Positions 2,140-41,986 of a DNA stretch of 43,545 nt are shown in pieces (the stretch's first letter is position 1; each line of letters begins with the position of its first letter). A model generated the notes under the pieces. It did not search any database. It worked only from the letters and a program-made list of their open reading frames with translations, and was not told the DNA's origin. This DNA is from Octopus bimaculoides. Its lineage: Eukaryota. The stretch lies in NCBI RefSeq assembly GCF_001194135.2, contig NC_068997.1:46070019-46113563 (forward strand), read 5' to 3'. The position numbers and the translations under genes were made by a program.

Positions 2140-2173
2140 CTGTGGTATCCATTATTGTTTCATCAGGTCCTTC
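2140..2173 (-). CDS. SAFB-like: Copy C 34-nt exon [11 protein letters not shown]
   Basis: ttttag/gtatg; homolog of B 22592-22625. Confidence 0.8.
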
Positions 2174-5100
2174 CTAAAAAAGCAAAGAAAACACCTGACA
2201 TGACTAAACAGTAACAAATGATGAAACAAGATACATACAGTCGTATTCCATTGCTTATCTTTATATTTGATGGAATTGTGTAAATGTATGAAGATATTTA
2301 GATCTCAAATGGCTTTCTGTTTCAAAAGTTAGTGAAATTTATAACTGGTTAACTCTGTTAAATGTAAGTAACCACCAGACCCAACCAAAAATTATTTTCA
2401 TACATATTATTAAATTAAAAATGTCAAATCCAAAACTAATTATCAAGTAGTGTAATTTAGTTAGTAGAACAATATAATAGCTGTAGTAAATGTTCGTTAC
2501 CTGCAGAACAGTACAAGTGTCTTTGTCCGTATCTAAAGAGATAGGTAGTTCTTCAAACTGGTCTTTATCAAAGGTATTATCTGTCAACATATCTGATGGT
2601 TTGGTATCACTCGAAAGCAGTCGATCCTCTGTAAGGTCTCCCACAGAAGTTTTGTCAGGGATCAAAGAATACCCATCTGGATTGGTGGTGTTTAAGAAGA
2701 CATCTGTTAATGCCACATTAGACGTCTCTGATTCTTTCTGAAAATTAAAATAAAACAGGTTTCTGTTACCCCTCAACATTGAATCATCCTATATTTATCC
2801 TTTGCTCACTGTAATATCCATTAGTACCTTATTCTTATTGAATGCTTAAATTATTGCTGTATTCCATTTTTACTATAATGATTTTTATAGTATTATTATA
2901 GAATAATAGTACTTCTTTGAGATTCACAGTGACCATTGTTGTGAGACGAGTAAAGCTCTTCTCAGTTATGAGATTCTATTGTTATTAATAACCAGAATAA
3001 ATTTGTGTAGTTTAATGGGTTTTTTCATGGATAGCCCCATCAAATTGACATTTAAATTCTAACAACAGAGTAAACCAACTGAACATATCACAGTTAGAGT
3101 ATGAATGAATGAATATTTTAATAACAAATAACCAGTTACGGATTTCTTTTCAAAATAACAACTGGCAAACGTCACCCAAAAAATAGTATGCTAAACAGTG
3201 ATAATTGGAAAATACATACAAAACAGAATTAATCCACAAAAATATGATAAAATTCACCAACCTCATCCATGTTGATTGTAGTATGTTCGTTTTCTGGAAA
3301 TAAAAATATTTCAACACCACATCAGTAATTTCAGGATTATACATTATTCAGTTACACACACCCTTGTATTAAACACATCTGAACAGAGGCACAAAAACAG
3401 TTACACACAGCTGTGTATGACATAACAGTGAATTAATCACATTACATTACATAATGCTGTTACATGCATATGACCAGTCTAAAATTCAGTGAGACAAACC
3501 TGAATACAAGAACATTGTATTATATATCAACTAGTTATAAGTACATGAAACAAGTTGCTGTTTTATATCCAATTATCACATTAACACTGGCAGGAAGAGC
3601 TTTAATGCACTTCTTGCCCATAAGATATATTACTGTCAACTGGGAATGGAACTTGTCAGCTCAGTAGACAGAAACAAAATAGTTTGGTAAGGAGAACGAC
3701 ATATCTAATTTATTTACAGTCTAAAATTATCATGATTGATACATCTCCCAGTGTTACCAATAACATTCTTACAAGAATCATCGTCAGTGTCATCACCAAT
3801 TAACATCCATCTCTGATGTTGGCATAGGTTGAACAGTTGGACAGGATCCAACAGAGCCAACTGTGTCAAGCTACAATGTCAGCCTTGACATGGTTCCTAC
3901 ATCTTGGACACCCTTCCAAATGCCAACCACTTTACAGAGCTTTTTCCATGACACCAACGCTAGGCAGGTTACCAAGTAATTTGCAAGACAAAGGAAAAGA
4001 ACCCAGCATTGAACAGGATTGTAGTAGAGTTGGAAGTTATGCCAGGTGTTGAGAGGAATGATAGTGAGACAGGCACAAGTGTCTTATAAAGAAAATACAT
4101 GGCTACCCCACATTATGTAAGGGTGGGTGGGAGTAAGTGGAAAGACAGTGATGGTAGTGACAAAGAGTCAGAGAGTACTCTCAAGATAAAACAAGGTGAG
4201 TATAGGAGAGAATATGGACAGCAGGTGAGGACAGATGGGTGGGTATGTTTATCAGAATGAGAAATGAGAGTAATAACAGATGGTTAGAGAAGGGGGTGAG
4301 GTGGATGTAATGAAGGAACAATGCTGGAGGTGTGGTTGATGGTCAATATGTGTATCAGAAGAAAAGGAATGGCTCAAGAAGGAAGAGGTGACAAGTGGCA
4401 GTACAAGAAGGGTGGAAAGCAGCAGTATAATAAACCTGTAGATAGACTAGAAAATAAGACGATATTGAGAGAGGGGCTTGAGTGAGAGAAACAGATTGAC
4501 AAAGTGGGGATATACAGTTACAGAGATGAATGTCAGAAGTATGTAGCGATGGCTATAGTGAATGGGAGACAAAGGTGTGGGGAAGCCATCAACAGCTGAT
4601 ATGAGATGGTATGTAAATGATAGCAGATACAAGGAGGTATTAAAGATGAAGTACGGCAGTCTTAAGATGTAGCTCAGAAAAGGAGAGAAAGCAATAAGTA
4701 GAGGCAGAAAGAGAGGTGATCAGTCAACAATAAAATTTGAAACACAGACAACTCAATATATACATACACACACAGTCTTAACACACATAAATGCATATAC
4801 AAAATCTGTATCATTAGTTATATAATTCTGATACTTACTAATAATATCTTCAGTAGATTGATTTTCTTCCAGATATTTCTCTTCACAGAAAGCCTAAAAT
4901 TGTCAAAATATCAAGTTAACCAAATAAAAAAGTCCACATACACATGACATTCTGTATGGCTGTTAAAATGTCTAGAGAAAGTGACACATTAAATAATTTG
5001 TTATGTAATTATATATAATTTGTTGTATATAATTAGAATGAGATGTGTGTGAGAGAGAGAGGGAATTGATGTAGGAAGGAAATGAACGTATTCTCAGAAA

Positions 5101-8100
5101 AATGCTGATAGAAAACATCTGTGAATTCTATTCCAAATCAGATTAATACAATTAACTGCCTTTTAATATTTACTTATTTCAGCCATGGGTTTAATTGAAC
5201 AAATTTCCCCTAGTATTTACATTTTTAAGTCTTGTACTAATTGTATTGGAGTGATTTGCCAAACTGTAAAGTTATGGGGTTGTAAACAAACTAACACTGG
5301 TTGTGAAACAACATGGGATGAGAATGGGTCAAAATTTTTCAGTGGTATTTTATGTAATTTAGTGAAATTATTAAGCAAGACTGAGTTGAGATAATTACAA
5401 GTGGGAAAAAAAAAAAAAACTGTTAGAAAGAAATTTTCAAAAAAGACAAACTCTCACCTCAATTTTTGCCAAAGCAGCTGGATGTTCTGAAAAATAACAA
5501 GAACATGTGGCTAAGAGGAATGAAAATGAATATCACATCAGGTATGTAATTAACAATACACCTACACATAATGGAATCTTAACATTTTCTTTAATATTTA
5601 GAACTTAAGCAGACAGGTGGATAGTTGCATGGATGGATATATATACACACATATATATTTGCCAGTGCCCCTGGACTGGCTCTTGTGCAGGTGGCACATA
5701 AAATACACCATTTTGAGCGTGGCCGTTGCCAGTACCGCCTGACTGGCCTTCGTAAGAGTTTTGAGCGAGATTGTGCCAGTGCCCCTGGACTGGCTCTTGT
5801 GCGGGTGGCACATAAAATACACCATTTTGAGCGTGGCCGTTGCCAGTACCGCCTGACTGGCCTTCATAGGATTTTTGAGCGAGATCGTTGCCAGTGCCCC
5901 TGGACTGGCTCTTGTGTGGGTGGCACATAAAATACACCATTTTGAGCGTGGCCATTGCCAGTACCGCCTGACTGGCCTTCGTGCGGGTGACACGTAAAAG
6001 CACCCACTACACTCTCTGAGTGGTTGGCGTTGGGAAGGGCATCCAGCTGTAGAAACTCTGCCAAATCAGATTGGAGGCTGGTGTTGCCATCCGGTTTCAC
6101 CAGTCCTCAGTCAAATCATCCAACCCATGCTAGCATGGAAAGCGGACGTTAAACGATGATGATGATGATGATGATATTTGTATTCCTAATCCATAGGATA
6201 TTACAAAAAATATGATTTGTAAAATCCATGAATTTTAAGGGGAATATTAATACATGTGTTTGTGTCCTCAGGCAAAATTTGCCTCTAGCTGCTTTGGCAA
6301 AAAGTTGTACTCTTTCGCCCCAACTTTCTCTCACTCTTTCTTCCTGTGTCTTGAGTAACGCTACGATGGACTTGGCATGACAGTGGTTTCTACTACTCAG
6401 TGGGTGCCACATTTTCTATTACCTGATCAAAAGCACACCAGGCTGATCACATCACAGGAAAATCTGACATTAAAGCAGAACTAGCTCGTTTCTTTGAACA
6501 TTTCCTAACCCAGAATGAGTATTGGCTTCATCACTTTCAGCTAGAAACAAAGAGACAATCCATTCAATGGAAACACCTATTCCCACCTGCTCCAAATAAA
6601 GCCAAAGTCATTTCATCTGCAGGGAAGGTGATGACCTCCGTTTTGGGGGATGCAAAAAACAATTGTGTTTATTGAATATCTTCAAAAAGGTCCACAATGG
6701 AGAGTATTATGCCTACTTGCTGAGGCAGTATTGAAAAGCCATCAAGACCAAACGTCCAGCAAAACTGACGAAAGGAGTCTTGTTTCATCAAGACAATGCT
6801 CTAGCACATAAATCCGTGGTTTCAATGGCTGCTGTGCATGAACTGGTTGATCATCCTTCCTATTCTCCTGATATGGTCCCATCTGACTTATCATCTGTAC
6901 CCCAAAATGGAAAAAAAAAACATCTGGGATCTTGGATTGCAGTGATGATGATGCCATATGTGCTGTTGATGACTTCCTGAAGGGACAGGATGAAAGTCTC
7001 TTCACCAATGGGATTCAAGTACTGCGACAACAATGGAAGTGTGTGAACCACAAGGGAGACTATGTTGCAAAGAAACCTCACTTGGTCGTATACCATGAGA
7101 GTATCTTGGTCAGCCTATGGACTTTTCAGCCGACCGTCATATGTGTATGCGTGAGGGGAAGTTGGGGGGCAATGGCCATAAAGGACATGCCTGTATGTAT
7201 GGATGGCCACTTAGCTTGATGTCTCTTCTCAAGCACAGCAAATTACCAGAAGTCTTAGTCCCTTGTCATCTTCTCAGCCAAGGCTCAAAATCTGAAGATC
7301 CTTTCTCACCACTTCGTCCATCTTCCTGAGTCTACCCATTCCACAGATCAGAACTTCTTTATGCAGCTGTCCCCATCCATATGCGGCAAACATGACGGAC
7401 CGTCACCTTACCCATTTCCACTTTTTCTGCAGCGGGTAAATTTACCCGTATGTGTATGTTTTATAAAAAAAAATATCCATTTTTCTGAAAGTTACCAGGA
7501 AACAAAGTCGAGGGGGTACACTTGTGTAGGAATGCCTACAAAGTATGTACGTGTGTGTCAAAAAGTGTTTGTTGGAGACTTGGCTGTTACTTCTAGCATC
7601 TGGAGAGACTGCTTGACGGCATATTTAATGCGCGGGTTGGCAAAAACCCTACGCGTGCGCAAGGACCGAAAGTGTTTATAAACATCCTGTATATGCAATA
7701 GATTCGCGAGGGGAGGGGTAATTTTTCCTTTTTTAAATTGAAATTTTTTGGCGATCGCCAATTTTTTTTTTTTTCAGTATCATAATCTCCGTATTTTTTC
7801 ACGTATTTCACAAAAGAAAAAAAATCTGAAAAAACTGAAAAAAAAAAAAAAAAAAAAAAAAAAAANNNNNNNNNNNNNNNNNNNNNNNNNNNNNNNNNNN
7901 NNNNNNNNNNNNNNNNNNNNNNNNNNNNNNNNNNNNNNNNNNNNNNNNNNNNNNNNNNNNNNNNNNNNNNNNNNNNNNNNNNNNNNNNNNNNNNNNNNNN
8001 NNNNNNNNNNNNNNNNNNNNNNNNNNNNNNNNNNNNNNNNNNNNNNNNNNNNNNNNNNNNNNNNNNNNNNNNNNNNNNNNNNNNNNNNNNNNNNNNNNNN

Positions 8101-9113
8101 NNNNNNNNNNNNNNNNNNNNNNNNNNNNNNNNNNNNNNNNNNNNNNNNNNNNNNNNNNNNNNNNNNNNNNNNNNNNNNNNNNNNNNNNNNNNNNNNNNNN
8201 NNNNNNNNNNNNNNNNNNNNNNNNNNNNNNNNNNNNNNNNNNCAATAAATAGTAATCTCTGCCATCGGATGAGTATCTGTAGCAAAATTTCATTGAAAAA
8301 TATGCATTACACTTGAATTTATGAGGAAACAAAGTAGGAGGGGGGGAGAAACTCACTTCTGTCAGTATGCCATAATATGGAATATAATAACGAGGGGGGG
8401 GGGGAATTGTTTTTTTGTTAATGGTGATGGTTCTGAAGACACAAGAAGAGTACAAACTATGCATTTTTATAACATGCTTCCTTCCATCATTCTAAAATGC
8501 GTGGTGCAGCAGAAATTTTCAAAAATCCCGGCGGAAAGAGAGAAAATCCAACTTATGTGGTTGAGATTGTTTCGAAACTCCGCCATTATACATGTCATTC
8601 GTTGTCCATTTACAACTAATTCACTGATACTATATTCCATTAGATTCCCATAAATAACGAAATGATGCTGGTTAAACAGGGAATACATGTACGACGAAGG
8701 ATTTCCATACTTCATAATAAATAATCAATTATGCTTTTATAAAATAAATAACAAGTCACTACAACGGGTTGTGTTTAAAATGGCTACAATGACTTTCCCC
8801 CACTATAATGAAACCTTCATTTTCTTTCAATATTCGCATGTTTATTTTGATCTGTTAGACATTTTTGCACGAGTTTTGAAGGTTCAAGAAACCCCAAACA
8901 TTGTTTATAATTATAACACTATGTTTTTATAGATATATATTATACATAAACACCGTCGCTCATTAAGATCTCTCCTACCTTTTCCAGACGTTCCAACAAC
9001 ACGGCCTTTACTCCAGTCTTGTCCAGACCTCGTTTCTCCAGTTCACTGCGAAGATCCACAGACCTTAAGTCTATTAACTTGTCACTGGAGATATCACCAT
9101 TTATACTAGCCAG
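2140..9113 (-). CDS. SAFB-like: SAFB-family gene copy C, 5' part (continues off the left edge)
   Basis: Exons 8979-9113, 2501-2737 and 2140-2173 splice in frame; introns align with copy B. Confidence 0.85.
2501..2737 (-). CDS. SAFB-like: Copy C acidic exon [12 protein letters not shown]...TVLQ
   Basis: 237 nt, phase 0-0, tttcag/gtaac. Confidence 0.85.
3800..3990 (-). mobile_element. Degenerate SINE 3' fragment
   Basis: Reverse complement resembles the gttggcgttaggaagggcatcc...aacccatgc tail of the element at 5660-6175. Confidence 0.45.
4060..4720 (-). mobile_element. Decayed retroelement RT fragment, possibly Penelope-like
   Basis: Strand-asymmetric purine tract; weak translated remnants ([16 protein letters not shown]). 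Confidence 0.3.
5660..6175 (+). mobile_element. SINE with three internal ~114-115-bp tandem units and a (GAT)n tail
   Basis: Units start at 5660, 5774 and 5889; body matches the reverse copies at 17921-18079 and 33482-33780. Confidence 0.8.
6421..7140 (+). mobile_element. mariner transposase remnant (DD34D type), 5'-truncated
   Basis: Frameshifted [40 protein letters not shown]; mariner-like 3' terminus near 7115-7140. Confidence 0.85.
8979..9113 (-). CDS. SAFB-like: Copy C exon 1 with complete SAP domain ([47 protein letters not shown])
   Basis: 135 nt from CTG, phase 0, gtagg donor; SAP pattern LxxLxVxDLRxELxxRGLxxxGxKxxLxxRL. Confidence 0.88.
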
Positions 9114-9280
9114 GGTACGATATATTATTATGCGCGATAGTCAATAGCCAGAGCTGTTGACTTTCTGACTTCACGTCGAAGCAAAAACTTATTAAGGACG
9201 CAATACTGTGTTGATATTATCTATACAACAGTTATCTCCCTTTTGTCGCGGTGACGTTGAAGCTACATCTTTTGTTGTTG

Positions 9281-9294
9281 CCACCAGATGGCAC
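9281..9294 (+). promoter_or_regulatory. CTCF-consensus motif upstream of copy C
   Basis: CCACCAGATGGCAC fits CCASYAGRKGGCRS; identical in copy B. Confidence 0.55.
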
Positions 9295-9366
9295 AAGTGT
9301 CAAACTTAAATGTATCGCTATGGCAATGATCATCTGATTTTTAATAGTCTTCTTATTCTTGCTTAG

Positions 9367-9740
9367 TGGAGGCGCAATGGCCCAGTGGTTAAGGCAGCGA
9401 ATTAGCGGTCATAGGATCGCGGTTTCGATTCCCAGACCGAGCGTTGTGAGTGTTTCTTGAGTGAAAACACCTAAAGCTCCACGAGGCTCCGACAGGGGAT
9501 GGTGGCGAACTCTGCTGTACTCTTGCACCACAACTTTCTCTCACTCTTACTTCCTGTTGTTTCTGTTGTGCCTGTAATTCAAAGGGTCAGCCTTGTCACA
9601 CTGTGTCGCGCTGAATATCCCCGAGAACTACGTTAAGGGTACGCGTGTCTGTGGAGTGCTCAGCCACCTGCACGTTAATTTCACGAGCAGGCTGTTCCGT
9701 TGATTGGATCAACTGGAACCCTCGACGTGGTAAGCGACGA
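9367..9740 (+). mobile_element. tRNA-derived SINE between B and C
   Basis: A box TGGCCCAGTGGT, B box GGTTTCGATTCC; same family as 28203-28574. Confidence 0.8.
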
Positions 9741-9942
9741 GTGAGCAAAGTTGCAGCAATTCCAAAAAAGGTCACCACAGAAGCAATCTGTTTGAATGAA
9801 TGAACTTTTTGTGGAAATTAAGTCGAGCAAAGCCAGAGGAGGTAAAGAAAAAAACATAAGGAAAGACAGGCATGAGGAATACATACAGAATAAATAAAAA
9901 TGACAAATAGAATACCTTGTTAGTGTTGTATAGTGAATAAAA

Positions 9943-10294: not shown

Positions 10295-10590
10295 TCATAT
10301 ACCACCACCACCACCCCTATGTGAAACCATGAGCCCACTATGCACTTGAGAGTTACCAAACATATTGCCATGTCCAAAGTACTGCCCCATCCCCCCACTG
10401 TTACCACTTTGACTACTGTTAACAAATGCTCCAGTGGCATCACGTCCTGTTTTGTTCGTGGGTTTATCAAGCCACGGTCCATTGGATCGGTTCATGCCAC
10501 TGTTGCCAATGTCTCCATGCATGTGGGACCAGTTGTCCATTTTCCTATCTACACCGCCGGAATCCCAAGATCTCTGATCTGGTCCACCAC
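10295..10590 (-). CDS. SAFB-like: Copy B terminal exon, Gly-rich, stopping early at GGGGI*
   Basis: ttttag acceptor; the tail homologous to A continues in a shifted frame to TAA 10239-10241. Confidence 0.82.
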
Positions 10591-11975
10591 CTAAAAGGAA
10601 TAAGACAGAAAAGATAGTATTTAAAGTTACACAAATATGAAAAATGAAAAGTTCAATGAATTAACTATAGAACAGAATAAACAAGGAGAATGTAGATGAA
10701 TGCAAAGAGAGGTATGGAGAAAAATAGGGCTTAACCCTTTAGCATTCAGATTACTCAGTCAAAAGTAATGTTTCTTTATTTACCTGGTTTTGAATTAATC
10801 ATGCATTATCTTGTAGGTTTGAGATTTTGATTAAGTGATTCTATATTTTGAGAATGACATTGTAGAGTTGGTATGAGAAGCCAGATATGGTTGAATATAA
10901 AACATAAAATACCTGGGCCCAGTTTAAATGAGAAAATGATAATAGAGAGGGACAGTTACAAAATGGTGGAGGATGGAGGTGAAGCTTTATTTGAGAGAGA
11001 AGGAGAGAAAAATGATTAAAACAAGCAGAAACTTACCAAAAGAATTTCTGCCCAGTCTATCGTTAGCTGATGTGTTTTGTTGGTCATTATCATATCCTCG
11101 GTCGGAACCAATATATCTTCTATCAAGTTCTCCATTTGGTCCCATATCTCTTCTTAATTCAGAGGGCATCCTGGAAATGAATCCATGAATACAAGCTGAG
11201 TAATCAATCAACATTCACCTATATACTGAGAGCCTTATGCTTACATCAACACTGACCCATACAGAGACTGGCAAACATGCCAACACTAATCCACAATACA
11301 CAAAACTGAGCTGTATAGAAGAATGATGTTTATAATAATATATACTAGCAAATGTGATTATCTGTATAAAGGCATAAGATAAAACCAAAAATTAAGATTT
11401 AAAAAAACAAATTACCAATTGAATTCTTCATCATTTCGAGAACGGTTATCAATTTGTCCTTCACCTCTGACTCGTGTATTGTGAAAAGGACCCATTTCCA
11501 TTCTCATCATTTCTCTTTCTTTACGGTCATCATAGCGACTTCCACCTTCCAAAGCTCTGCTGTCCCTTCTATCGTAACGTTTAATTCGTCTTCCATAATC
11601 TGTATTATACCTGAGAACGGAAATGAGAGATTAAATGAGATGTATTATATATATATATTATATATATGCAAGGAAATATTGATGACTGTTACATTAATGA
11701 TGCTTATTGAGGCAGAAACATGTTCTGAACTTGCCTCTTGTTTGCAAAGAAAGCAGACTGCCTTTTCCTTAACGGTATATCAATTTCAGAGAATTCTTGA
11801 TTCTTGATATTGTATCTCCTTCTCATTCAGAATCAGTAGCAATTACCAGCAGGTCTTTGTTTACCTTCTCTCAAAGCAAAGATAATTTCTATAAATCATA
11901 ACTGATTTTGTATGGTATTTAGAATATTTTTATTCACTTTGCTCTCGAAATTCATGCTACTGACCACTGAGTTAA

Positions 11976-12010
<35 letters not shown>

Positions 12011-17882: not shown

Positions 17883-17923
<41 letters not shown>

Positions 17924-25855: not shown

Positions 25856-26005
25856 GGTATGATTTATTATATATAAGTGACTGACGAGAGTTGTTGATCC
25901 CCTGATATCACGTTGAAGCAAAACTTAAGGACGCAATTAATAGTTTCAATATTTATTTACACAAGTTAGCTCCCCTTCTAGTTGAAACTGCCTCTTTTGT
26001 TGTAG

Positions 26006-26019
26006 CCACCAGATGGCAC
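26006..26019 (+). promoter_or_regulatory. CTCF-consensus motif upstream of copy B
   Basis: CCACCAGATGGCAC, 151 bp upstream of the CTG. Confidence 0.55.
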
Positions 26020-28909: not shown

Positions 28910-28941
<32 letters not shown>

Positions 28942-29154: not shown

Positions 29155-29528
29155 TCACATAGATCCCATAATATTATAAGCATCAAAACGAGGCTCTTGC
29201 ATACGTCCACTCATATTACTACCACCACCACCACCACCGCCACTGCCACCACTACTACCACCACCATGTGTAACCATCATGATCCTACTGTGTGACTGAG
29301 TGTTGCCAAACATATTACCAGGTCCCATGTTCTGTCCCATCCCCCCACTGTTACCAGGTCTACTATTGTCAACAAATGCCCCACTGGCATCACGCCCCGT
29401 TTTGTCCATGGGGTTACTAAGCCACGGTTCGTTGGATTGGTCCATGTCTCCATGCATGTGGGACCAGTTGTCCACTTTCCTATCAACACTGCCAGAACCC
29501 CAAGGAGGTCTCTGGTCAGGTCCACCAC
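29155..29528 (-). CDS. SAFB: Copy A terminal coding exon, Gly-rich tail ending [11 protein letters not shown]
   Basis: ttctag acceptor, TGA at 29155-29157. Confidence 0.9.
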
Positions 29529-32500
29529 CTAGAAGGAAGAAAACATAGAAAATGTATTAATAAATACACGAATATGAAAAATAAAGCGTGAAAGGAATTG
29601 ATGTCAAAATAAAATGAAGAGAATATTGATGAAAAGAAAAGACAAAAGAGATATGGAGAAGAACAGGGCTTAATCCTTTAGCATTCAGATTACTCTGTTG
29701 AAAGTAATGTTTTTTCATTCACATTGTTTTGAATTAGTCATGCATTATCTTATAGCTTCAAGATTTTAATGAAGTGATTGTTTATTTTGAGAATGACACT
29801 GTAGGGGAGGTATGAGAGGTCAGATCTTGTATAGAAAACAGGTAAAATATTTGGTCTCAATGCAGCAAGTTTAAATCTTAAAGTGTTAAAGGAGGAAAAT
29901 GGGAGAGGGGCAGTAAGAGAAAGGTGGAGGAAGGGTGTGAAATTGTATTCACAAGGCATGACTGTAGAGTAACAAGCTTGATTCTCAGCCACATGGACCT
30001 GGGTACAGTCCCACCGGGTGGCACCTTGGGCAAGTGTGTTCTACTATTGCCTCAAGCTGACCAATGCCCTGTGGGTAGATATGGCAGAGAAAAACTGAAA
30101 GACCATCAACCGTATGTGTGTCTTTGTCTCCCACTAGCATTTGACAACCAGTGTTGGTGTGTTCACATCCCTGTAATTCAATGGTTTGGCAAATTTCAAA
30201 TTTTGACACAGGGGCAGCAAAATTAGAAGTGGGAGTAAATCGATTATATCAACCCTAGTGCTTAACTGATACTTATTTTATTGGCCCTGAAAGAATGGAA
30301 GTCAAACTCAACTTCAGTGGAATGTGAACTCAGAACATCAAAATAGACTAAATAACATTAATGAATTTTGCTCAGCCTTCTAACAATTCTGTCAGCTCAG
30401 TGCCTAAGTGAGAGATAAATATTACCTTTTGGTATTAATACCACTTCTGTTGCTCTTTATTATTTTTTGCTAATCCCACTGGCTATTTGCAAGGGAGAAT
30501 TTGACTGCTATGTCTAGCTGGACGTCTGCCATTGAGAAGCTCAAGGAAGAGCAACATCATGTGACCTGACAGTTGCAGCAGATGCATTGGAAGATTATTA
30601 CCTGCCAGTGATATAAACATGGGTGCCTATATGAGAGGTCCTCATTTGAAAGAATAATTACTAGGCAGGGAAAAGAGTACTGCATTAATATTCCTGATGG
30701 CAGTGCCATGGCATCTGCAGTCTAATGATTGGAATAAGGAAGATAAAAGAAGGGGAGAGAGAACCCAACAAAATAACAAGGGGAAACTTACCAACAGAAT
30801 TTCTCACCCTGCCCAATCTATCGTGAGCTGATAAATTTCGTCGATCATTATCACGTCCTCGATCGGGACCAACATATCTTCGATCAGGCTCTCCATTTGG
30901 TCCCATATCTCTTCTTAATTCAAAGGGCATCCTGGAAGTAAAAAAAAAAAATCAGATACAAAATTAGCAAATTACTTTGTAACATTGGCGTTTAAAACTT
31001 TGTGTAAGGGACAATGTATACAGGCTGATCAATCAATCAACATTCACCTCAGGTGGTGCTATTATTTTTTTATTTCTTTATTTCTTATTTCTTTACTGCC
31101 CACAAGGGGCTATACACAGAGGAGACAAACAAGGACAGACAAACGGATTAAGTCGATCATATCGACCCCAGTGCATAACTGGTACTTATTTAATCGACCT
31201 CGAAAGGATGAAAGGCAAAGTCGACCTCGGCGGAATTTGAACTCAGAACGTAGCGGCAGACGAAATACCGCTAAGCATTTCGCCAGGTGGTGCTATTATG
31301 TTAGATCAATCACTGGTCGAAACATATCTCAGTTTATAAAAGATTGTTTACACCAACACTGACCCAAAACTTATCTACACAAACTCTCACTGATATGAAA
31401 GATGATGTTTATAACAGCCATACAGCAGCTAGTGTGTAGATCAATACCAACCAATAGAACAGTATAAAATCAAAACTAAAAAAGTTATGTTTAAAAACAC
31501 AAATTACCTGTTGAGTTTTTCATCTGTTCGAGAACGATCTTCAGCTCGTCTTTCATCTCTGACTCGAATATCTCGGAAAGGACCCATTTCCCTTCTCATC
31601 ATTTCTCTTTCTTTACGTTCATCATAGCGGCTTCCACCTTCTAAAGCTCTGCTGTCCCTTCTATCGTAATGTTCAACTCGTCTTCCGTAATCAGTATTCT
31701 CATATTCATTATAGCTGAGAGAGAAAAAAACCCCAGATGAAATGAGATATATAATTGTGTGTATACATGTATATATATATAATGAAATATGACAACTTTT
31801 ACATTAATGATGCTTATTGAGGCAGAAACATGTTCACTCGTTTGCAGAGAAAACAGACGGCTTTTTCCTTGGTTCTTGAAATTGTATTTCCTCCTCAATC
31901 AGAGTCAGTAGTAATCACCAGCAGGTTTTTGTTTACCTTCTCTCAAAGCTACGATAATTTCTATGAATCAGAATTGATCTTGTGTGATATTTAGTATACC
32001 TTTATTCAATTTGCAGTCACTGACCACTGAGTCAAGATATACACAAACACACTTCACATTAACAAACCTATTCTACACCCTGATCGTACTTTAACCTCTT
32101 ATCACTTAGCATACAGCTGCCTCCGTCCTTACTGTAGTCACACTCCACTGAACAGAAAAAAAAAACCTAGTTCTAAGAAAGCATACTAAAACAGATACAG
32201 GAGCATGATGCAGTCCTTCATCCCATCAGATCATGTCACACCATCGATGTCGGTGTGGAAGATGGATATTAAAAGATTATTACCCTCATCACTGATCAAG
32301 ATAATATTTTAAAGAACTCAATGCAAATACAGATGTGATATTTTAGTAACCAAATAACTGAAGCTTGCGTACCTGTGAGGTCAAGAAGCTTGCTTTCCAA
32401 CGATGTGGTTTTGGGTTCAGTCCCAAAGCACGACACATAGGACAAGTGTCTTCTGCCATTAACCCGGGCACACCAATGCCTTGTGAGTGGATTTGGTAGA

Positions 32501-35500
32501 CGAAAATTTAAAGAAACCTGTTGTGTATAAATGTGTGTGCGTGTACTTTGTGTTGACATCATGTGATGGTTGTAAATAAGCATCACTGTCATACCAGGGG
32601 TGTTGCTTGTTTTCAGTCTTCCACAAAAAACATGCCTCAACAAATTCTGTCTGAACAATGCAAGCTTCAACATGTTCTTTATTTCTCTAAAAAGCCCAAC
32701 TAAATGCAAGATATAAGCAGATCAGCACTTATTATGCAAGATAATATATTGACACTGAACAAATATAGGTACAGAGTAGCTGTGTGGTTAGGGAGCTAGC
32801 TTTGCAATCTTGTGGCTTCAGAGTTAATCTCATGATGTGGAACCTTAGACACATGTCTTCATCTATAACTTCCACAACAAGTGGAAACGTCATACACACA
32901 CACATGTAATTTTCTATTTATGTTTCCCAACTACCACTGCTTCACAGCTGACAGTTTGTTTTGTTTATGGGATTGCAACTTAACAGTCTTGTGAAAGACC
33001 CCGAATAAGTATGAGAGTCATTCTGTTCAGCAAAACCCTTCAAGGCAGTGTCCCAGCATGGCTGCAGCTTATTAAATGAACTGAAACATGTGGGGTAAAA
33101 AGTATAGGGTGCGAATATATAAGCATGCACACGCCACACTTAAGAGGCCAAAAGGTTGAGAAATGCAATAGAAACTTTAATTTAGAACTGTAGTCAGGCA
33201 ATAAGACATCAACGACAAAATATAGTTTCCAGCATTGGCAACTTACCGTGATTCATTCTGGAATGGAAGATCAAATCTAGAGGGGTTGCCAGAACTGCTC
33301 ATCCTGGAGCGTTTGCGTTCATCCCAAAGTTCTCTGTCACGAAAGCCACTTCGATCATGAGGTCTTTTTGCAGGATGTCTCATCTCTTCTAACCTGATAT
33401 TAAACAAAAAAACAACAAAATCAAATAAACAATAGCTATATTGAATGACAAGCAGTTATAAATAATATGAGATAGTAAACAATCATCGTTCATCGTTTAA
33501 CGTCCGCTTTCCATGCTAGCATGGGTTGGACGATTTGACTGAGGACTGGTGAAACCAGATGGCTACACCAGGCTCCAATCTGATTTGGCAGTTTCTACAG
33601 CTGGATACCCTTCCTAACGCCAACCACTCCGAGAGTGTAGTGGGTGCTTTTACGTGTCACCCGCACGAAGGCCAGTCAGGCGGTACTGGCAACGGCCACG
33701 CTCAAAATGGTGTCTTTTATGTGCCACCCGCACAAGAGCCAGTCCAGGGGCACTGGCAACGATCTCACTCGAAAATCCTTCTCAACTATAAAACAATTAA
33801 CAACCAGGACACCAGTTAAGCTAACAAGGTACCTCTATGTATGTAGTCATTAAACAAACTAGAAACGGCACCCAAAACTTCTGGAAGCTGTCCTCAACTT
33901 TCCAGAAAGTAAAAAACAAAATGTTGACTGCATTCAATAATGTAGTCCTACATTATTTCTAGAAGAAAAACAATGATCAAACAGAAAAAAAAAGTAGAAT
34001 GATAATAGATAGAACACCTTTGATTATAGTTCTATGTAATCTGGGCTGACTTACGTTTCAACAAAACTATCAAAGTGTTAATATCCACTTAACAAAAATA
34101 AAGCAGTAAACAGCCCCCAAATAATGATAAAAAGTATTCTTTCTGGTCATGGCCAGTGGAATATGAAGATTGGCTGTTATTGCTAGCAGATAAAGCAACT
34201 ACACCATATACAGGCTTCCTCAGAGTTTTTTTTTTTTTTTAATCGGTCAGTGGTTGTGATAAACATGATGTTGGATAAGTCAGAGGGGATGTCTTATACC
34301 CTCCATTATGAGATCAACAGATTAGCATTACAATATCTTTACATATATATGAATCTCAGTTGAGATTACTTTCCACAATTAGGAAAAATCCTACAACCTA
34401 ATCACCAATCTAACAAACATGAAATTGTTCAAAGGGAATAAAATAAATTCAGTCAAGTTGTATCAGACANNNNNNNNNNNNNNNNNNNNNNNNNNNNNNN
34501 NNNNNNNNNNATCAGACACTAAAAAAAAACACAAAACAGAAAAGAAAAAAAAATGAGTCGTAAATATTTAGAAATGATGAGAGAATGTGAAATAATTCAT
34601 TTTTATCTGTAGAGATAAAGCTATAAATATTAACATAAATATTGGGTTAAAAACCCCTTTTGGATCGAAAATAGCAAATGCTAGTCTTAGGACAATGATA
34701 AAATATCTGTCAGCTATTGACTTTCCCTATAGAAAAGGGATTTTAACGTAATATCTACATGCCTTTATCTATGGCTTTTCTGTATTCTAGAGATTAAACT
34801 TACCGCAACATCTCAGCACAACGCATCTCTACATTACGTCTTTCTATTTCAAGAAGTTCTTTTTCCATTCTGTATCTTAATAGTTTCTCCTTTTCCAGTT
34901 TCATTTTTTCCAATTTCATTTTCTCTAACCTGAAAAGAAGAGTGAAAGAACATAAGGATAACATTAAGAATTTAAACAGAAAACAAATGACAATCCCTGC
35001 CTACATTCACCAACTTTTATGTACCCTGATACACGTTACACTGTAAAGATATCCTGAGAGATGTTGTTTTGAATCTAGGAGAAATTACTTATTTGTCCAA
35101 ATGTCAAAAAAGGGAATGGTAACAGTTGTAAGGCCTTCAATCATTGGCTCACATGATAATTAAACAAACAGTTCACAAGAATCAAGGAACTGTTTATTTG
35201 ACAACCATTTTTTAAACTTTCACTGCTAAGTTCAATTCTTCCTTGGGCTTTGAAAGGATTTTGAAGAAAAGTACTCCAAATATGTCAGCCTCTCGTTATC
35301 CCAAAGCAGAATCAAACATTTACAATGGTAGCCAACCAACCTGCTGGATTATCAGATCTTAAAAAAGAAAAATATCAGGAGATTGCTAACACAATTTAAA
35401 CAAGATAAATAGATAATAAATATATCACTCAATACATCTTACATGCTCTGGTTTTTAATTTTCTTCTCATATATATTGAATATCTTCCTTCTTAGCCTCT

Positions 35501-38500
35501 ACCTTTCTGACCAAATTCCAAATACCTCATAAGCCACAATTATTGTCTAAAAGATGCATACTCTGCTAAAGGCACCGAAGAACCAGATGCGGTACTGAAC
35601 ATGACAACACAATAATTCTACCACAATAACAGAGATGACCTCAGACAGCTTTTAACATTTTCCATCAATCAAATTTCACTGGCAAAGCATTGGTCAACTG
35701 AAGACTATGATAGAAATTACTCGTCTAATGTGATACACAATGACCCTGAAGTTTGTATAATGGGAGTGTGAAGTAAACTTCTCACCCACACAATCATGAC
35801 ATTCTGTCTTAAAACAGTTTAAATGTGAATGCACTTTTCACAAACCTTATCTTCTCTCTAACTTTGCCCAATCTTTTCACCTCCTCCTTCTGTTCCCGTT
35901 CCACATTCTGCTGAAGCATCCGGGCCATGTCAAGTTTTTTCAACCGACGCCTCTCCTGTTCCCTACGATTCCTTTGTCTCTGACGTAAACGCTGTCGCTC
36001 TCTTTCCTTCTGTCAAGAAATTTGGTGGGGTTTTGTTTTTATTTTCAAGAATGGAATATGAAAAGAGAATAATTATTAAATAGCAAAGAATAAAACAAAC
36101 GACATAAAATCAACAAAGAAACCCACACAAAACTAAATAACCGTACAAAATAAGACTTGATATTATACAAACAGTGACATAGAACATGACAAATCTAAAT
36201 ACCACAATAATTTAATACAAGCATCTCAGATTTTAGCAGTTCTGTATAGCACTAAAAGCTGCTACTCTGACATCATAATACCCTTATATCCTGATATAAA
36301 TAGGGAAATCTCTTTGTTTTACATAATTTTTCCACACTAGACTAGGAGCTACAATTCCCTCCTCTTACTAACCATTCAATCTAAGTAAAATTGGAATAAA
36401 TTTTATCAGTTGAGCAAACTTGAGTAAGTACAATTATATCATTTATTACAGCAAATAGGACAAAACATAACAGCTGCAGAAAGATTTGAACTTCTACTCT
36501 TGAACCAGTGTCCTACATCCAGAGTAAGTGGCTGTATTCTAATGAAATAGTTGACCTACTTCCACCTAATCTGGTTTGAAGTTTCTTTACATATTCTGTA
36601 CTGCAACAGCCACAACAGTTACTACCACAACTATTGTGACTATTGCAGAGTCACATCTGAATCAATCAGCTTAATTTAAACGATTTCTTTAGGTTACATC
36701 TCAGCCATGTTACACACTAAGACCTTCATTGGAAGATACTGCATTTCAATGTTAACACTCCAGGTATTATCAGTTTTATGGTACAGGAGCTCTATCTCAG
36801 GGGTTTTCAAACTGTGGTCCGCAAGGACAAGACAGGGGGTCTGTGGACAGCAAATACTTTTTATGGGCAATTTGATTTTATATATGTTTTTTAATCAAAA
36901 TCTTTTAATTGACAATAAACCTATTTGTTAAATACTGTTAAATAAATAAATGTAAAAATATATGTTATTTTAAGCAAATATTTATGTATAAATTTCATAA
37001 GCGTTTATAAGGGGGTCCCTAAGGTAAAGCCTGAAATATAAAGGGGTCTGCAAGTCAAAAAGTTTGAAAACCCCTGCTCTATCTCATGATTTTAAGAAAT
37101 GATCAAGGATGATAACCAGACCAGATTCAGGGTCAAGTAAGTGAAGTTAGCCACTCTAGTTTCAGGGTCAAGTGACATTAGGCACTACAAGTTCAGGATA
37201 GAATAAGTTACCCACTCTAGTTTTAGGGTGGAGTAAATGATGACAAGCACTCAAGTTTCAGGATCAAATAAGCGAAATTAGCCACTCTAGTTTGTTCAAG
37301 GCAAAATTATTTATCTTATTCTACTTCAACTACACACTTTAGCCACATTAAAAAACACCTACATGAAATTGTACTTACTTTTATTTGAGCAAATGATAAA
37401 ATATCTTTCTTGGAAGAAGGGTCACCAGGCCCTCGGGGTTTAGGCTTTGTTGTACTGGGAACTTTCTCTTTGGTGCTTGCTGCTGCTGCTGCGGCTGCAG
37501 GCTCTGCACTTTTCTCAGAGCCTTCTTTTGTAGATGGTTTCAAACTTGTTGCTGGTTTAGCTGCACTCTTATTCGGTGTAGCTGCATGAGATTTATCTGA
37601 AACAGTAAATCATTCACCACCATCAATTAAAGTTCACTTTTTTGTATGTGCTTGCACTGGTCAGATGGAGTTTGTTGGGGCAGATTTTCTATCGTCATAT
37701 ACCTTTCCTGATGCCAACTCTCAGCTATTTCTAAACAAGATCATACCTTCCTATGGCTAGACAGATCTTTCACACAGAAGACCAAAAATAAATAAGACTT
37801 GTATGAGGGCAATGCACATTTACAACCATCATGTGCTGTCAAGACAATGGTACAAACAAGCACACATTTCTACACATAGATACATACACATACAATAGGT
37901 TTCTTCCACCTTCTGTCAACTCACAAGGCTTTAGTCAGATTGGAGATAGAGTAAAGACACTTGCTGAATGTTTCATGAAGTGGGACTGAAGTTGAGACCA
38001 TATTGTTAACCACAAAGTTTCAGTGGCACTTAAAACACACTAGAAAAATGCTTACAAATCCTGCTAATCTAACCCAGCAAAAATCAGGATATACTCCAAG
38101 TTTAAAAAAAAAAGCAAAACACACACACATGCGACTGACCTGAGCTTTTGTGATGACTTCCGCTGATTCTGCTAGTTTGTCTTTTGTCATCTCTTCTGTT
38201 GGATGTTCTCCTGCTTTTGTCATCTTTCTTTAAATCTTTCTTCTCAACTTTCTTCACACCATCTTTTTTCTCTGCAAACACAAAAACACCATCACAATCT
38301 ATAAATTTGAAGGCAGTATAGAGATACCTATTGTGTCAAGGTAACCACCATCAACATCATTTTTGATGCCTACTTTTCCATGCTCCCATGGAGCAGAAAG
38401 AATTTGTTGAGGTGGATTGTTCTATGGATAGATGCCCTTCCTGTCACCAACAGTCACGTTTCCAAGTGAGGTAATATGCCCTCAGGACCAGACATGTTTC

Positions 38501-41500
38501 AAGGAAGATTAGAAACACAGGACACTGCTTGCACCATGGCAACATTTCTTTACAACTATCACACAAAGTCAAGGCACACAGATAGGTTTATATATGTAAT
38601 ATATGGACAACAGACTTCTTTCAGTTTTTGCCTACCAAATCCATTTATGGGGCTTAGGTCAGCCTGGAGCTATAGTAGGAAACACTCGCCTAAAGCACCA
38701 CACAGTCACACCTGATATTTGTGATTTTTTGAATACTATTATTGTAGTTAAATAATTGTGAAATGCCAATGGTTTTATTAAACTAATTACTTGGTTAGTA
38801 ACATGAAACACTAAGTTCAGCTAACTTCAATGCAAAGACTTGTAGAGTCTCTACATTGGAATTCTAGAGCCAAATTCTGTTTAGAGTACAAATATGAAAC
38901 ACTGGAAGAAGTCATACCATCTTTCTTCACCTCAGCCTTTTCTACTTTCTTTTCTCCTGACTTGATTTCTGGTGCTTTAGTCTGAGTTGTAGGTTCTTTT
39001 CTAGCCTGAAAAATAAAGGAAATATTNNNNNNNNNNNNNNNNNNNNNNNNNNNNNNNNNNNNNNNNNNNNNNNNNNNNNNNNNNNNNNNNNNNNNNNNNN
39101 NNNNTATGACACCTCATCCCTACTCCTTTATTAACGATGTATTTGTACTATGTGCAAATAGACACATACAATCTACAGTTTATCATCACACATCTCTCTA
39201 CCAATAGATTATTACTAATATCATTGCATGTTATACATTCACACACACATAACTGGGTCTCTAAACAAAATAACGAACTTAGGATAACTCACCCTTTCAA
39301 CGGATATCATACGGCCATGCAGTTCGGTCTGATTCAAATGCTGAATACATTTAGAAGCTTCATGTGAAGAAGACATAGTTACAAAACCATAACATCGAGC
39401 ACCAGGGCTCCGTGCATTTGTCACTACTTTGGCACCAACAACCTGATGTAGACAAAAACAAAATCTAAATTAAATTTTATACAAAAAATTTATTTTGGTA
39501 TTTATTCAGCCCAATACTCATCAATATTACCAATACTAATAAATTATTTCTACATTTCATAGATTAAAAGCAGTAAATGGTTGAAACAGAAGTCAAGTGA
39601 AACTCGTTACAAGAAGCATTTCTTAAATTGGTTTGGTCCTAATAAAAAGGCAATGTCTATGGTTCTCCAAGACTGAAAAAAAATCTATATGATCGATAAT
39701 TTGCTTAAATAGTTACAATGTCAGCTGTCTAGAAAGTTCACATTCTGGAAAAAAAGGACTAAGAGCAGGAGTTACTATAGGCTCTAAAGTAGGTGTACAC
39801 ATAATGTCACTAACAAAATAAAAGTGAATCAAGCGTCAAGAAGTGGGAGTAGCACAAGACAAGCCAGTTCCAAGGAACAGACCCCACAGCAGAAGGCATA
39901 GATAAGGGAAGAGAGAAAAGACAGCAGGTCCTTCAACTGGAAGCCTGAGTATGTTGACAAAAGTCTTCATACCATTCAGGTGAGTGCCATTTCACTTGGA
40001 TGCGGTTTATGAATAGCAACAGATGTGAGAGGAGTATACTAAAGGAGGTTTCATCTGAGCTGTGTAGAAGGCTAACAGTTGAAGTATTTTCTGGTCCTAA
40101 AAACAAAGACCAGAATTTGTAATGAAGCATTGTTATGATGAGAATATACATTTAGCAGGAGATCCTTAGCCAGAGCAAGGCCTAGCACTTTTAAGAAACA
40201 CTCTACAGTCCAGTTGCTGCATGACCTTCATACTGAGAAAGTGTAACAGGAGTTGGGGTGGGTGACGATCTTACTTTTCTTGATAGTGTCTGTGTCACTG
40301 TGTTGTTCAATGTGTCAAGATAGATACACCTTTCTTGAAGAAAGTTTTCAAGAAGTCAGTGCAGGTTTGGCATCCGGTGAATGCAGATGAAAGTTGGGGG
40401 CTAAAGATAAGGGACGACTGAAGTGTGGTTATCATCTACATAGAAGTGGTGGGTATCACTGAAGGTGACACAAAAGGAGCACAAACTGAACCATGGAGCA
40501 GACCAAAAGTTAATGGAATGTGAGTCTAAGAGAGATATAGACATGCACATGCTGAAGCTCTAGTCACCTGACAGGAAACCTCCAATCCAAGAACCCACAG
40601 GCAGTTAGATATACTCAGAGATTTAGGGCACATAAATCACAGTGAAATGCTTTGCAACATTATTTTCTTCAAGTATTTTTCTAAGAGTAAAAACTTACCG
40701 AGCTACTGATGAGTGAAGAAGAATATGTCTCCAGTAGATTGGCTTTATGTAAGCAGTAGTGGAGGTTATCAAGGGGAGAGATGGATTCTGAGTGTTAGAG
40801 AAGGTTATTTGACAGACTATCATCTCTGACAAATTGAAAGTGAGTGCAATAAGACGATAGTTGGGGTAATTTCCAGGAAACGGGACATATTGTAACAAGA
40901 ATCCAAAGACTGAGATATATGGAGTCAAATTGAAAAGTTTGGTGAGGATAGGGTTAGCTACAGATTTCATGGCTAAAGGTATTATTGTTTTGAGATGATT
41001 GGGAGAGATTTTGCATTTGGCATGTATGTGGTGGTGGAGTGGAAAACAAAAGTTTTGAGAGAGGATTTACTTAGGGTATGCCATGTGGAGATGGAGACAA
41101 AGTAAGCAATCCCTGTAGAGGCTTCCTGCTCAAGAGTATTGGTTGCAGAACCAGAGAAGTGGAAGGGAGAAGGATTTTGCAAAGATGGCTCAAATCAGTT
41201 TTGAAAACGAACAAGATCAGTAGTTGTTTTTGGAAATGAGAAAGCTTACAGGTTGTACCATACATGGCAGCATCCTTTGCATTACAGATGGTAGTTTTGC
41301 AGATTTCATGTTACAAGAAAGCTGCCTGGTGTGTAAGGGTGAATTTCTGTCACCTGCCTAGCTGTCTCTGATATGTTCAGAGTCAAGTATATATATATAT
41401 CAAAGAAAATAGTATAGAACTGGTGGAGTTCTGACCATTCTGCTAACCATAAGTGCCAGAGGGCTCAAACGAGCAGGGAAGGTATGTCAAGCAGTACATG

Positions 41501-41986
41501 CAAGTGTTATGGACAACGACACACAAAGCAGAGAGTGGTGGTGGTTTAGCAGTGGCTACATTTGGAGAAGAGAAAGAAGTTGTTTACAGAGTAAACACAC
41601 ATTGGACTAGCATAGATAGTGTGAATATAAGTACTAATTAGTAATAAATATGATTAGTAAAAAATTATATGAAATAGAAGAAACAGATTTTATTCAACAT
41701 ACCTTGCCATATTTGGTAAAAAGCACTTTAAGGTCTGTAGCACGGGTGCTTGTGGCAAGACCACTGACCCACAGATTCCGACTGTTTTGGTCATTGCCTA
41801 TTAAATACAAAAATAAATCAATATGAAAAGATTACCAGCAAATACGACACTTAAAGGTTAAAACTGCAAATAAATACTTCACACTGAAAACAACCTTAGT
41901 GAATAACAATAGGGTCCAGAACAAGTAGAAAAAAAAACAACTTACTTTTGATATTCTTGATAACTTTGGGTTTAGAAGCTGAAGAA
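29155..41986 (-). CDS. SAFB: SAFB/SLTM-family gene copy A (canonical; 5' exons beyond the right edge or in gap 42207-42833), 12 visible coding exons
   Basis: All exons have GT-AG boundaries and compatible phases, giving one open frame: [51 protein letters not shown]...[11 protein letters not shown] (closely matches the SAFB1/SAFB2/SLTM RRM), Lys-rich linker, R/E coiled-coil, R/D-rich region, Gly-rich tail ending [11 protein letters not shown]. Confidence 0.92.
29950..30180 (+). mobile_element. Degenerate SINE (ggcaccttgggcaagtgt core)
   Basis: Related degenerate copies at ~26220-26410, 32360-32640 and 32770-33100. Confidence 0.5.
30200..30405 (-). mobile_element. Degenerate SINE
   Basis: Reverse homolog of 13142-13370. 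Confidence 0.5.
30792..30931 (-). CDS. SAFB: Copy A exon MPFELRRD...RNSV
   Basis: 140 nt, ttccag/gtaag, phase 2-1. Confidence 0.9.
31066..31283 (-). mobile_element. 5'-truncated SINE with 16-bp TSD
   Basis: TSD CAGGTGGTGCTATTAT at 31050-31065 and 31284-31299; T-rich tail. Confidence 0.85.
31508..31714 (-). CDS. SAFB: Copy A R/D/E-rich exon [12 protein letters not shown]...EKLN
   Basis: 207 nt, ctctcag/gtaat, phase 2-2. Confidence 0.9.
33247..33393 (-). CDS. SAFB: Copy A exon [14 protein letters not shown]...FQNES
   Basis: 147 nt, atcag/gtaag, phase 2-2. Confidence 0.9.
33482..33780 (-). mobile_element. SINE, same family as 5660-6175, single internal unit
   Basis: High identity to the reverse complement of ~5880-6165; absent from the homologous B intron. 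Confidence 0.85.
34804..34929 (-). CDS. SAFB: Copy A coiled-coil exon 2 ([15 protein letters not shown]...AEML)
   Basis: 126 nt, tttcag/gtaag, phase 2-2. Confidence 0.9.
35846..36009 (-). CDS. SAFB: Copy A coiled-coil exon 1 ([10 protein letters not shown]...KVREKI)
   Basis: 164 nt, gacag/gtttg, phase 0-2. Confidence 0.88.
36798..37076. mobile_element. hAT (Charlie-like) MITE
   Basis: Perfect 16-bp TIR CAGGGGTTTTCAAACT; 8-bp TSD CTCTATCT. Confidence 0.9.
37125..37295. repeat. Degenerate ~30-35-bp minisatellite
   Basis: Recurring ccactctagttt / agtttcaggatc / cagggtcaagt units. Confidence 0.5.
37379..37596 (-). CDS. SAFB: Copy A exon DKSHAATP...DILSFAQIK
   Basis: 218 nt, tttcag/gtaag, phase 1-0; ends in ILSFxQIK just before the coiled-coil. 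Confidence 0.88.
38140..38271 (-). CDS. SAFB: Copy A Lys-rich exon EKKDGVKK...HHKSS
   Basis: 132 nt, ttgcag/gtcag, phase 1-1. Confidence 0.85.
38918..39005 (-). CDS. SAFB: Copy A exon [10 protein letters not shown]...EVKKD
   Basis: 88 nt, tttcag/gtatg, phase 0-1. Confidence 0.85.
39293..39442 (-). CDS. SAFB: Copy A RRM exon 2 ([23 protein letters not shown]...ISVER)
   Basis: 150 nt, phase 0-0, RNP1 RCYGFVTM. Confidence 0.95.
39830..41390 (-). mobile_element. Decayed LINE (CR1/L2-like) ORF2 fragment
   Basis: LTKLFN...NYRLIALT (NYRPISLT-like) and [13 protein letters not shown] motifs; strand-asymmetric composition. Confidence 0.55.
41703..41797 (-). CDS. SAFB: Copy A RRM exon 1 ([13 protein letters not shown]...KYGK)
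   Basis: 95 nt, taatag/gtatg, RNP2 LWVSGL. Confidence 0.95.
41946..41986 (-). CDS. SAFB: Copy A exon [13 protein letters not shown] (41 nt, phase 2-1)
   Basis: ttgcag acceptor, gtaag donor; homologous to copy B exon 19061-19095. Confidence 0.8.

Follow-up and report, generated by a model that had tools for sequence, protein, structure and literature searches.

Scaffold attachment factor B (SAFB) proteins link chromatin and the nuclear matrix with RNA processing, and are encoded by a single gene in most invertebrates. Vertebrates have SAFB1 and SAFB2, arranged as a divergent pair with a bidirectional promoter of ~500 bp (PMC4582101, PMC2857882), and also SLTM (PMC4582101); Drosophila has one SAF-B gene, CG6995 (PMC2857882). 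The stretch of DNA analysed here (CM046617.1:46070019-46113563, assembly GCA_001194135.2; 43,545 bp, 36% G+C, seven runs of N), referred to below as the window, comes from Octopus bimaculoides and cuts through a cluster of SAFB genes. The complete locus consists of at least seven SAFB units in two arms, G<-C<-B<-A on the minus strand and D->E->F on the plus strand, of which the window is a slice containing B and parts of A and C. A single cephalopod SAFB gene probably gave rise to this cluster through repeated tandem duplications and one inverted duplication, before O. bimaculoides and Octopus sinensis-Octopus vulgaris diverged; the duplicates would then have diverged by domain loss. Genes are annotated at NCBI as SAFB1-, SAFB2- or SLTM-like in three Octopus species, and a full-text search of the literature found no relevant paper linking SAFB or 'scaffold attachment factor' with octopus or cephalopods. 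The octopus cluster is an undescribed case of a well-known event, lineage-specific tandem expansion with subfunctionalisation: ordinary birth, divergence and partial decay of tandem duplicates, rather than a new kind of system.

Sequence homology places the genes in the SAFB family. A phmmer search returned hundreds of SAFB1/SAFB2/SLTM matches, with E-values down to 1e-20 outside cephalopods, and NCBI names the products of the window 'scaffold attachment factor B2' and similar. The domain order (SAP, RRM, K-rich, R/E-rich, Gly-rich) is that of vertebrate SAFB1, SAFB2 and SLTM; the central RRM is present, and its core is 76-87% identical to those of vertebrate SAFB proteins. The SAP domain is found in A (outside the window), is absent from B as encoded and is doubtful in C. 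All three C-terminal regions (K-rich, R/E-rich and Gly-rich) are present in A, and B is without the K/S-rich exons. A and D keep the ancestral architecture of single-copy invertebrate SAF-B, as in Drosophila and in the SAFB-like genes of scallop and gastropods, and their RRMs are nearly identical to those of the Mizuhopecten and Gigantopelta proteins. The octopus differs from single-copy invertebrates in having a multigene cluster; each non-cephalopod mollusc in the homology searches was represented by a single protein cluster (one row) in the hit list. As for vertebrate SAFB1 and SAFB2, the octopus paralogs are physically linked, with A and D divergent across a short CpG-rich spacer. Unlike the vertebrate pair, they are of independent origin, number at least seven linked units rather than two and lie mostly head-to-tail; some units lack the SAP or K-rich exons, the RRMs of B and G have altered RNP1 and RNP2 motifs, and transcripts spliced across units have been modelled.

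A tBLASTn search with octopus SAFB proteins located three colinear same-strand units in the window, all on the minus strand, and the splice junctions are GT-AG at all mapped coding exons (Table 1). Self-BLASTN revealed a colinear same-strand duplication with an offset of ~17-20 kb and 67-84% identity, from an end block pairing 2075-3782 with 22525-24672 (78-84% identity) to one pairing 18755-19125 with 41652-42016 (67%). Exon sizes in A and B correspond closely (41/35, 95/95, 150/150, 126/126, 147/147, 207/195, 140/134 and 374/296 nt, respectively). The earlier note on this DNA, made from the sequence alone, had described three same-strand copies with matching exon sizes and alignable introns, and in this it was right. 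The spacings it gave, ~2.8 kb between A and B and ~800 bp between B and C, were of the right order but short: the A stop (29155) lies ~3.3 kb from the relic first exon of B (~25876), and the B stop (10295) ~1.2 kb from the first exon of C (9113). Its description of the array as a triplication had to be abandoned once the sequence on both sides was examined, and the ends of A and C are cut by the window and not by biology.

The 5' exons of A (SAP exon, exons 2-5, acidic exon and long middle exon) sit to the right of the window, where positions 1-9000 of L003 duplicate window 1916-9309 on the same strand and include an undamaged SAP exon with its ATG. The part of C from the RRM to the C-terminus sits to the left (L007); NCBI model P0002 maps there at 100%, and P0127, an older model, extends this C 3' part by the latter half of a canonical RRM. 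P0002/P0127 was considered as a separate unit 'F' and rejected, as it maps as the 3' part of C. A fourth minus-strand unit, G (P0256, P0251), lies farther left on L007, and the plus-strand units are D (P0130), E (P0123) and F (a 512-aa model). L001 (CM046617.1 46070313-46095954, reversed) is 100% identical to window 25936-295. The RRM exons of C and the long middle exon of A would lie in the chromosome stretches 46062671-46070018 and 46113564-46118624, respectively, outside the sequence analysed. A and D are head-to-head, with start codons 1280 bp apart in O. bimaculoides (L003 8721-10000), and the spacer between them contains no N, has 41% G+C and has a CpG observed/expected ratio (CpG o/e) of 1.17, versus a window mean of 0.41. 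In O. sinensis, A and D are ~18.9 kb apart, with a gene for a 320-aa DUF7041 protein between them (L004/L006).

In A, the canonical copy, the SAP, RRM, K-rich, R/E-rich and Gly-rich regions are all present. This copy is strongly constrained: dN/dS (the ratio of nonsynonymous to synonymous substitution rates), computed from local exon alignments, is 0.075 relative to O. sinensis (611 codons; dS 0.148). Its SAP exon is intact, with an ATG (L003 8720-8586, outside the window), and its RRM scores 48.8 bits against Pfam RRM_1 (cut-off 20.7). The acceptor at 41986, which opens the first exon of A in the window, was confirmed by direct reading of the sequence. The NCBI model P0245 begins with 'MTFTIHNHHPNISKHLFYCC', which is intron sequence (window 42048-41987) upstream of this true acceptor; the model is truncated because the upstream exons of A lie beyond the gap at 42207-42833. 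The gaps over A are all intronic, so its open reading frame (ORF) is unaffected. The O. sinensis models P0134, P0243 and P0137 could not be threaded exactly onto their own loci, and only P0141 could; the misfit of the other three is likely to come from NCBI models correcting assembly indels. A 330-bp patch in A (38697-39026, minus strand), which includes the exon at 39005-38918, adjoins the gap at 39027-39104. Its identity to paralog E (L002 18175-18505) is 99.1%, against only 93% to the A ortholog of O. sinensis, and its flanks match E at 85-93%; this points to local gene conversion or a gap-filling artefact.

B evolves ~7 times faster than A at the protein level, and yet its reading frame and splice sites are kept by selection. 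All 12 of its 12 visible junctions are AG/GT and 1815 nt of visible ORF are without stop or frameshift; in a simulation of neutral substitution at the observed level, an ORF of this length stayed open in 0.8% of cases (p 0.008). The dN/dS of B is 0.50 (575 codons), and its nonsynonymous and synonymous rates differ (Fisher p = 0.0012). Its last six exons thread exactly to NCBI P0003 (XP_014784463, O. bimaculoides 'scaffold attachment factor B2'), and, judging from the O. sinensis ortholog, B would be continuous and in frame across its two gaps. The first exon is a relic. Its ATG is gone and it carries a 21-nt deletion, both of which are common to O. sinensis B, so the exon must have been dead by the time the species diverged; a second deletion in O. 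bimaculoides, of 23 nt, takes out KAVLLERL, and O. sinensis has an in-frame stop. This relic matches only positions 2-24 of the 37 in the Pfam SAP profile (25.6 bits). Exon 2 is missing from O. bimaculoides B, as are the three K/S-rich exons; in O. sinensis B, a 161-nt exon directly follows the RRM exon. The R/E-rich MKLEK exons and a short Gly tail (HRGGGGGI) are kept. The number of MKLEK exons is one in A and two in each of B, E and the 3' part of C, and O. sinensis isoform X1 strings three together.

The RRM of B (NLWICGFPVNISTKGLVSILSKHGKVEDCQKVTKYYKRSGRCHAFVTMSTEAEALECIMRLNKTRVNGMRLTVER) is of a diverged type common to paralog G, and these two form a long-branch clade with 100% support in the RRM tree. 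Both RNP motifs are altered, with NLWVSGL changed to NLWICGF and RCYGFVTM to RCHAFVTM; the substitutions, read directly, are S->C and L->F in RNP2 and Y->H and G->A in RNP1. The domain passes the Pfam RRM_1 threshold with 36.0 bits. It is 36-46% identical to the canonical RRM, and the idea that it is merely degenerate was rejected, as O. sinensis P0141 and P0250 conserve it. A and E carry one and the same canonical RRM across species, which closely resembles the scallop domain.

C is predicted to retain a canonical RRM; it keeps its own C-terminus and has lost the start codon of its SAP exon. The RRM evidence is the older model P0127, which starts inside a canonical RRM. Exon 2 is missing, and exons 4 and 5 and the acidic exon are intact, with AG/GT boundaries. 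The translation of exon 1 scores 37.7 bits against Pfam SAP, and exon 1 of O. sinensis C carries a 1-nt insertion. In both species, the ATG has been replaced by an identical ACCCTGG motif in exon 1 of B and C, which suggests that the start codon was lost before the B/C duplication.

The paralogs have 1:1 orthologs in O. sinensis and O. vulgaris. Protein identity between O. bimaculoides and O. sinensis is 97.1% for A (versus P0134), 93.7% for D, 93.1% for the 3' part of C, 92.7% for the 3' part of E, ~90% for G and 87.0% for B (versus P0141). In a neighbour-joining tree of the C-terminal region (258 columns, 200 bootstraps; vertebrate sequences not included), the 1:1 ortholog groups have 98-100% support, Octopus A/B/C/E/G form a clade with 91%, octopods group with 85%, and cephalopods form one clade, with 100%, apart from gastropod and bivalve SAFB. 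On these sequences, the expansion appears to have taken place within cephalopods and to be older than the split between O. bimaculoides and O. sinensis-vulgaris. The cuttlefish Acanthosepion pharaonis has a SAFB model with two tandem RRMs (P0138) and a SAFB-like model on the same contig (P0151), and cuttlefish may have separate SAFB duplications of their own.

Most of what the earlier note had concluded about the nature of the array agrees with these results. The copies had been described as differently modified, as is the case: B has lost the SAP and K-rich exons and has a changed RRM, C has lost its ATG, and A is canonical. They were held not to be collapsed haplotypes, and the paralogs are 67-84% identical at the nucleotide level, each with an O. 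sinensis ortholog at 81-94%. A lineage-specific origin, independent of the vertebrate pair, follows from the cephalopod clade and the Octopus subclades; the contrast drawn with the head-to-head arrangement of the vertebrate genes is only half correct, because octopus A and D are themselves head-to-head. The note proposed that a single locus in a long-read assembly would overturn the claim, and the gap-free O. sinensis assembly, on which this was in effect put to the test, contains multiple units. It also allowed for ancient subfamilies shared across Bilateria; in the C-terminal tree, the octopus copies do not group with distinct non-cephalopod subfamilies, and cephalopods form one clade excluding gastropod and bivalve SAFB.

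Across every gap, the window aligns colinearly with the N-free O. sinensis loci, over its whole length and at 81-94% nucleotide identity. An apparent inversion of ~97 kb separates the two species, with a central block containing the 5' part of C, B, A, D and the 5' part of E (window ~1916-2560; L002 9583-9682; O. sinensis L005, L006 and L008). In the inverted paralogs C and E, the breakpoint falls immediately 3' of the acidic exon. O. sinensis P0137 consists of the 5' part of C and the 3' part of E, and P0135 of the 5' part of E and the 3' part of C; a predicted F ortholog follows P0137. The C-side junction is contiguous sequence in the window and the E-side junction coincides with a 100-N gap, and the inversion may reflect either genuine recombination between paralogs or an error in scaffolding.

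Two routes to the expression of B and C can be proposed. Proteins lacking SAP may be produced from their own, still CpG-rich, 5' ends through downstream AUGs; alternatively, B and C may borrow the A promoter and SAP exons through the splicing of read-through transcripts. Exon phases are common to all units, so any cross-unit splice would stay in frame. A mixture of the two routes, with some transcripts starting at the units' own 5' ends and others reading through from A, is favoured. Gene structure, orthology, lesions and selection regime are observed here, and the expression and roles of B and C are inferred. The NCBI gene of O. sinensis spans A and B and has seven isoforms. X4 (P0134) is A only; X1-3, X5 and X7 join the 5' two-thirds of A to the MKLEK and C-terminal exons of B in the NCBI models, and P0243 has the 5' part of A joined to the B C-terminus. 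X6 (P0141) consists of A exons 1-5, a 35-kb intron and then B from the acidic exon on, with exact threading and canonical splice sites. In O. bimaculoides, a 243-aa SAP gene model covers the whole window. Within the window, CpG-rich 1-kb intervals at gene starts occur only on the first exons of B and C.

Several observations weigh against this overall reading of the locus. The read-through isoforms are Gnomon predictions, in which the repeated MKLEK exons could yield spurious junctions, and AATAAA hexamers 77 nt past the A stop and 136 nt past the B stop fit independent termination. The RRM exons of B, taken alone, have an omega (dN/dS) of ~1.5 (16 nonsynonymous versus 3 synonymous changes; not significant), this RRM may have lost RNA binding, and the NCBI models of O. 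bimaculoides B are no more than fragments of 122 aa and 334 aa, in part owing to the two exons that fall in gaps. D groups weakly (50% bootstrap) with the sole Argonauta protein found in the search, which dates the first duplication (D versus the rest) only loosely, and other cephalopods were sampled at the protein level only. It is very hard to believe that the array is an assembly artefact, produced by tandem-placed haplotypes or a mis-scaffolded single gene in a gap-rich Illumina and Hi-C assembly. Six N gaps lie in the finding, one of exactly 100 N, the patch resembling E adjoins a gap, and the E-side junction of the rearrangement falls on another gap of 100 N; however, the units differ by 16-33% in non-coding DNA, gap-free O. 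sinensis has three units in identical order and orientation, each at ortholog-level identity, and O. vulgaris has separate orthologous proteins. A pseudogene reading, in which B and perhaps C are decaying, non-functional relics and the long chimeric O. sinensis isoforms are annotation artefacts, is also improbable, although the dead SAP exon of B, the lost ATG of C, the raised omega of B and of its RRM, the absence of K-rich exons from B and its fragmentary annotation would all fit. The open frame and intact junctions of B, the low probability of such a frame under neutrality, an omega significantly below 1 and an RRM still recognised by Pfam above threshold argue for selection, as do the intact orthologs: P0141 for B in O. 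sinensis, and P0250 and P0140 for the related G type in O. sinensis and O. vulgaris.

More weight can be given to the possibility, itself doubtful, that the units are fully independent genes with their own promoters and poly(A) sites, B and C encoding SAFB proteins without SAP and without shared-exon splicing. The first exons of B and C have kept their CpG-rich islands, the poly(A) hexamers follow the A and B stops, and NCBI models the O. sinensis C counterpart P0137 and O. bimaculoides E (P0123) as SAP-less. However, the first exon of B is badly damaged in both species, the methionine used by P0137 is a leucine in O. bimaculoides C, and in gene models from both O. sinensis and O. vulgaris, 3' modules of other units are repeatedly attached to A-type 5' exons. 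At the other extreme, and rather speculatively, the minus arm (A-B-C, perhaps with G) might be one complex transcription unit, with a single CpG-island promoter and the A SAP exons spliced to alternative downstream modules, each nearly a whole gene.

Table 1. Coordinates of SAFB features, CpG-rich islands and gaps in the window
Feature	Position	Strand	Remarks
Extents of units A, B and C	~41986 to 29155; ~25876 to 10295; 9113 to 2501	-	
Copy A, 3' two-thirds	29155..41986	-	NCBI P0245 (XP_014769865, 647 aa) threads exactly, GT-AG junctions
A, first exon in window and RRM exons	41986-41946, 41797-41703, 39442-39293	-	
A, K/S-rich exons	39005-38918, 38271-38140, 37596-37379	-	
A, R/E-rich exon	36009-35846	-	
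A, MKLEK exon	34929-34804	-	
A, exons	33393-33247, 31714-31508, 30931-30792	-	
A, Gly-rich C-terminus and stop	29528-29155	-	
B, relic first (SAP) exon	25773..25848	-	Six-sequence exon-1 alignment
Copy B, coding exons	10295..23261	-	Mapped from O. sinensis isoform P0141 threaded on L006
B, acidic exon	23261-23019	-	
B, next exon	22625-22592	-	
B, long exon (487 nt)	20298-20050 (visible)	-	5' end lost in 100-N gap
B, exon	19095-19061	-	
B, diverged RRM exons	18905-18811, 18575-18426	-	
B, 161-nt exon	within gap 16866-17796	-	Hidden; predicted from O. sinensis ortholog
B, two MKLEK exons	15946-15821, 14102-13986	-	
B, last exons	12208-12062, 11610-11416, 11170-11037, 10590-10295 (stop)	-	
Copy C, 5' third	2501..9113	-	Remainder left of window (P0002/P0127 on L007)
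C, exon 1 (SAP)	9113-8979	-	ATG replaced (ATCATGGCC -> CGTACCCTGGCT), ORF otherwise open
C, exon 4	4893-4839	-	
C, exon 5	3293-3262	-	
C, acidic exon	2737-2501	-	
CpG-rich island, C exon 1	8501..9750		CpG o/e 0.93-1.0 (window mean 0.41)
CpG-rich island, B relic exon 1	25251..26250		CpG o/e ~0.9
Intronic gaps	7866-8242, 19249-19782, 34470-34510, 39027-39104		N-runs
Gap	20299-20398		100 N; ~2 kb in O. sinensis; removes 5' 244 nt of B 487-nt exon
Gap	16866-17796		Counterpart L006 65777-66478, holding P0141 161-nt exon 65856-66016
Gap	42207-42833		Outside finding; ~15 bp in O. sinensis

Repeats are scattered over the units. An interspersed repeat of ~114 bp is present as 2.8 tandem copies in a C intron (5659-5999), with copies at 94-97% identity in an A intron (33482-33780) and beside a B gap (17923-18079), and more in other loci; it has been inserted differently in the three units and is probably a SINE-like element (SINE, short interspersed nuclear element). 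A 366-bp element occurs in the B-C spacer (9362-9727) and, inverted and at 91% identity, downstream of the A stop (28214-28576). Further copies, at 87-92% identity, are found in L002, L003 and the O. sinensis loci, and the element lies at the 3' ends of several units. Three short ORFs, in C intron 1 (6780-7219, plus strand), a B intron (20687-21001, plus strand) and the A-B spacer (27461-27544, minus strand), look like Tc1/mariner transposase motifs but gave no significant Pfam match, so their identity as transposable elements is not claimed.

Shared and alternative exon blocks also occur together in the protocadherin and UGT1A clusters. Provided that the isoform models of O. sinensis hold, the octopus locus would resemble them in joining duplicated modules to common exons within one transcription unit. 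It would differ in polarity, which is reversed, as the shared part is 5' (the A promoter and SAP exons) and the alternatives are 3'; the octopus modules are, moreover, near-complete genes with their own terminator, in an arrangement supported by gene predictions only. Should the minus arm indeed be a single transcription unit, the octopus would make SAFB proteins with a common head for tethering to DNA and the matrix and different bodies for RNA binding and oligomerisation, one of them carrying a novel RRM of the B/G type, whose RNP motifs are changed and whose RNA specificity is probably different as well. A nuclear RNA-binding scaffold protein would then be encoded by a cassette locus of a 'shared 5', variable 3'' kind.

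The annotation of the O. bimaculoides locus is fragmentary because of the gaps, with models of A, B and C that are truncated or split, and the comparison with O. sinensis shows how they can be repaired. The octopus lineage is known for unusual RNA biology, and with this cluster an RNA-binding regulator joins the few gene families known to be expanded in octopus. With at least seven linked SAFB copies in Octopus, including SAP-less copies and copies with a remodelled RRM that are still under selection, the locus constitutes a natural experiment on the separable domains of SAFB.

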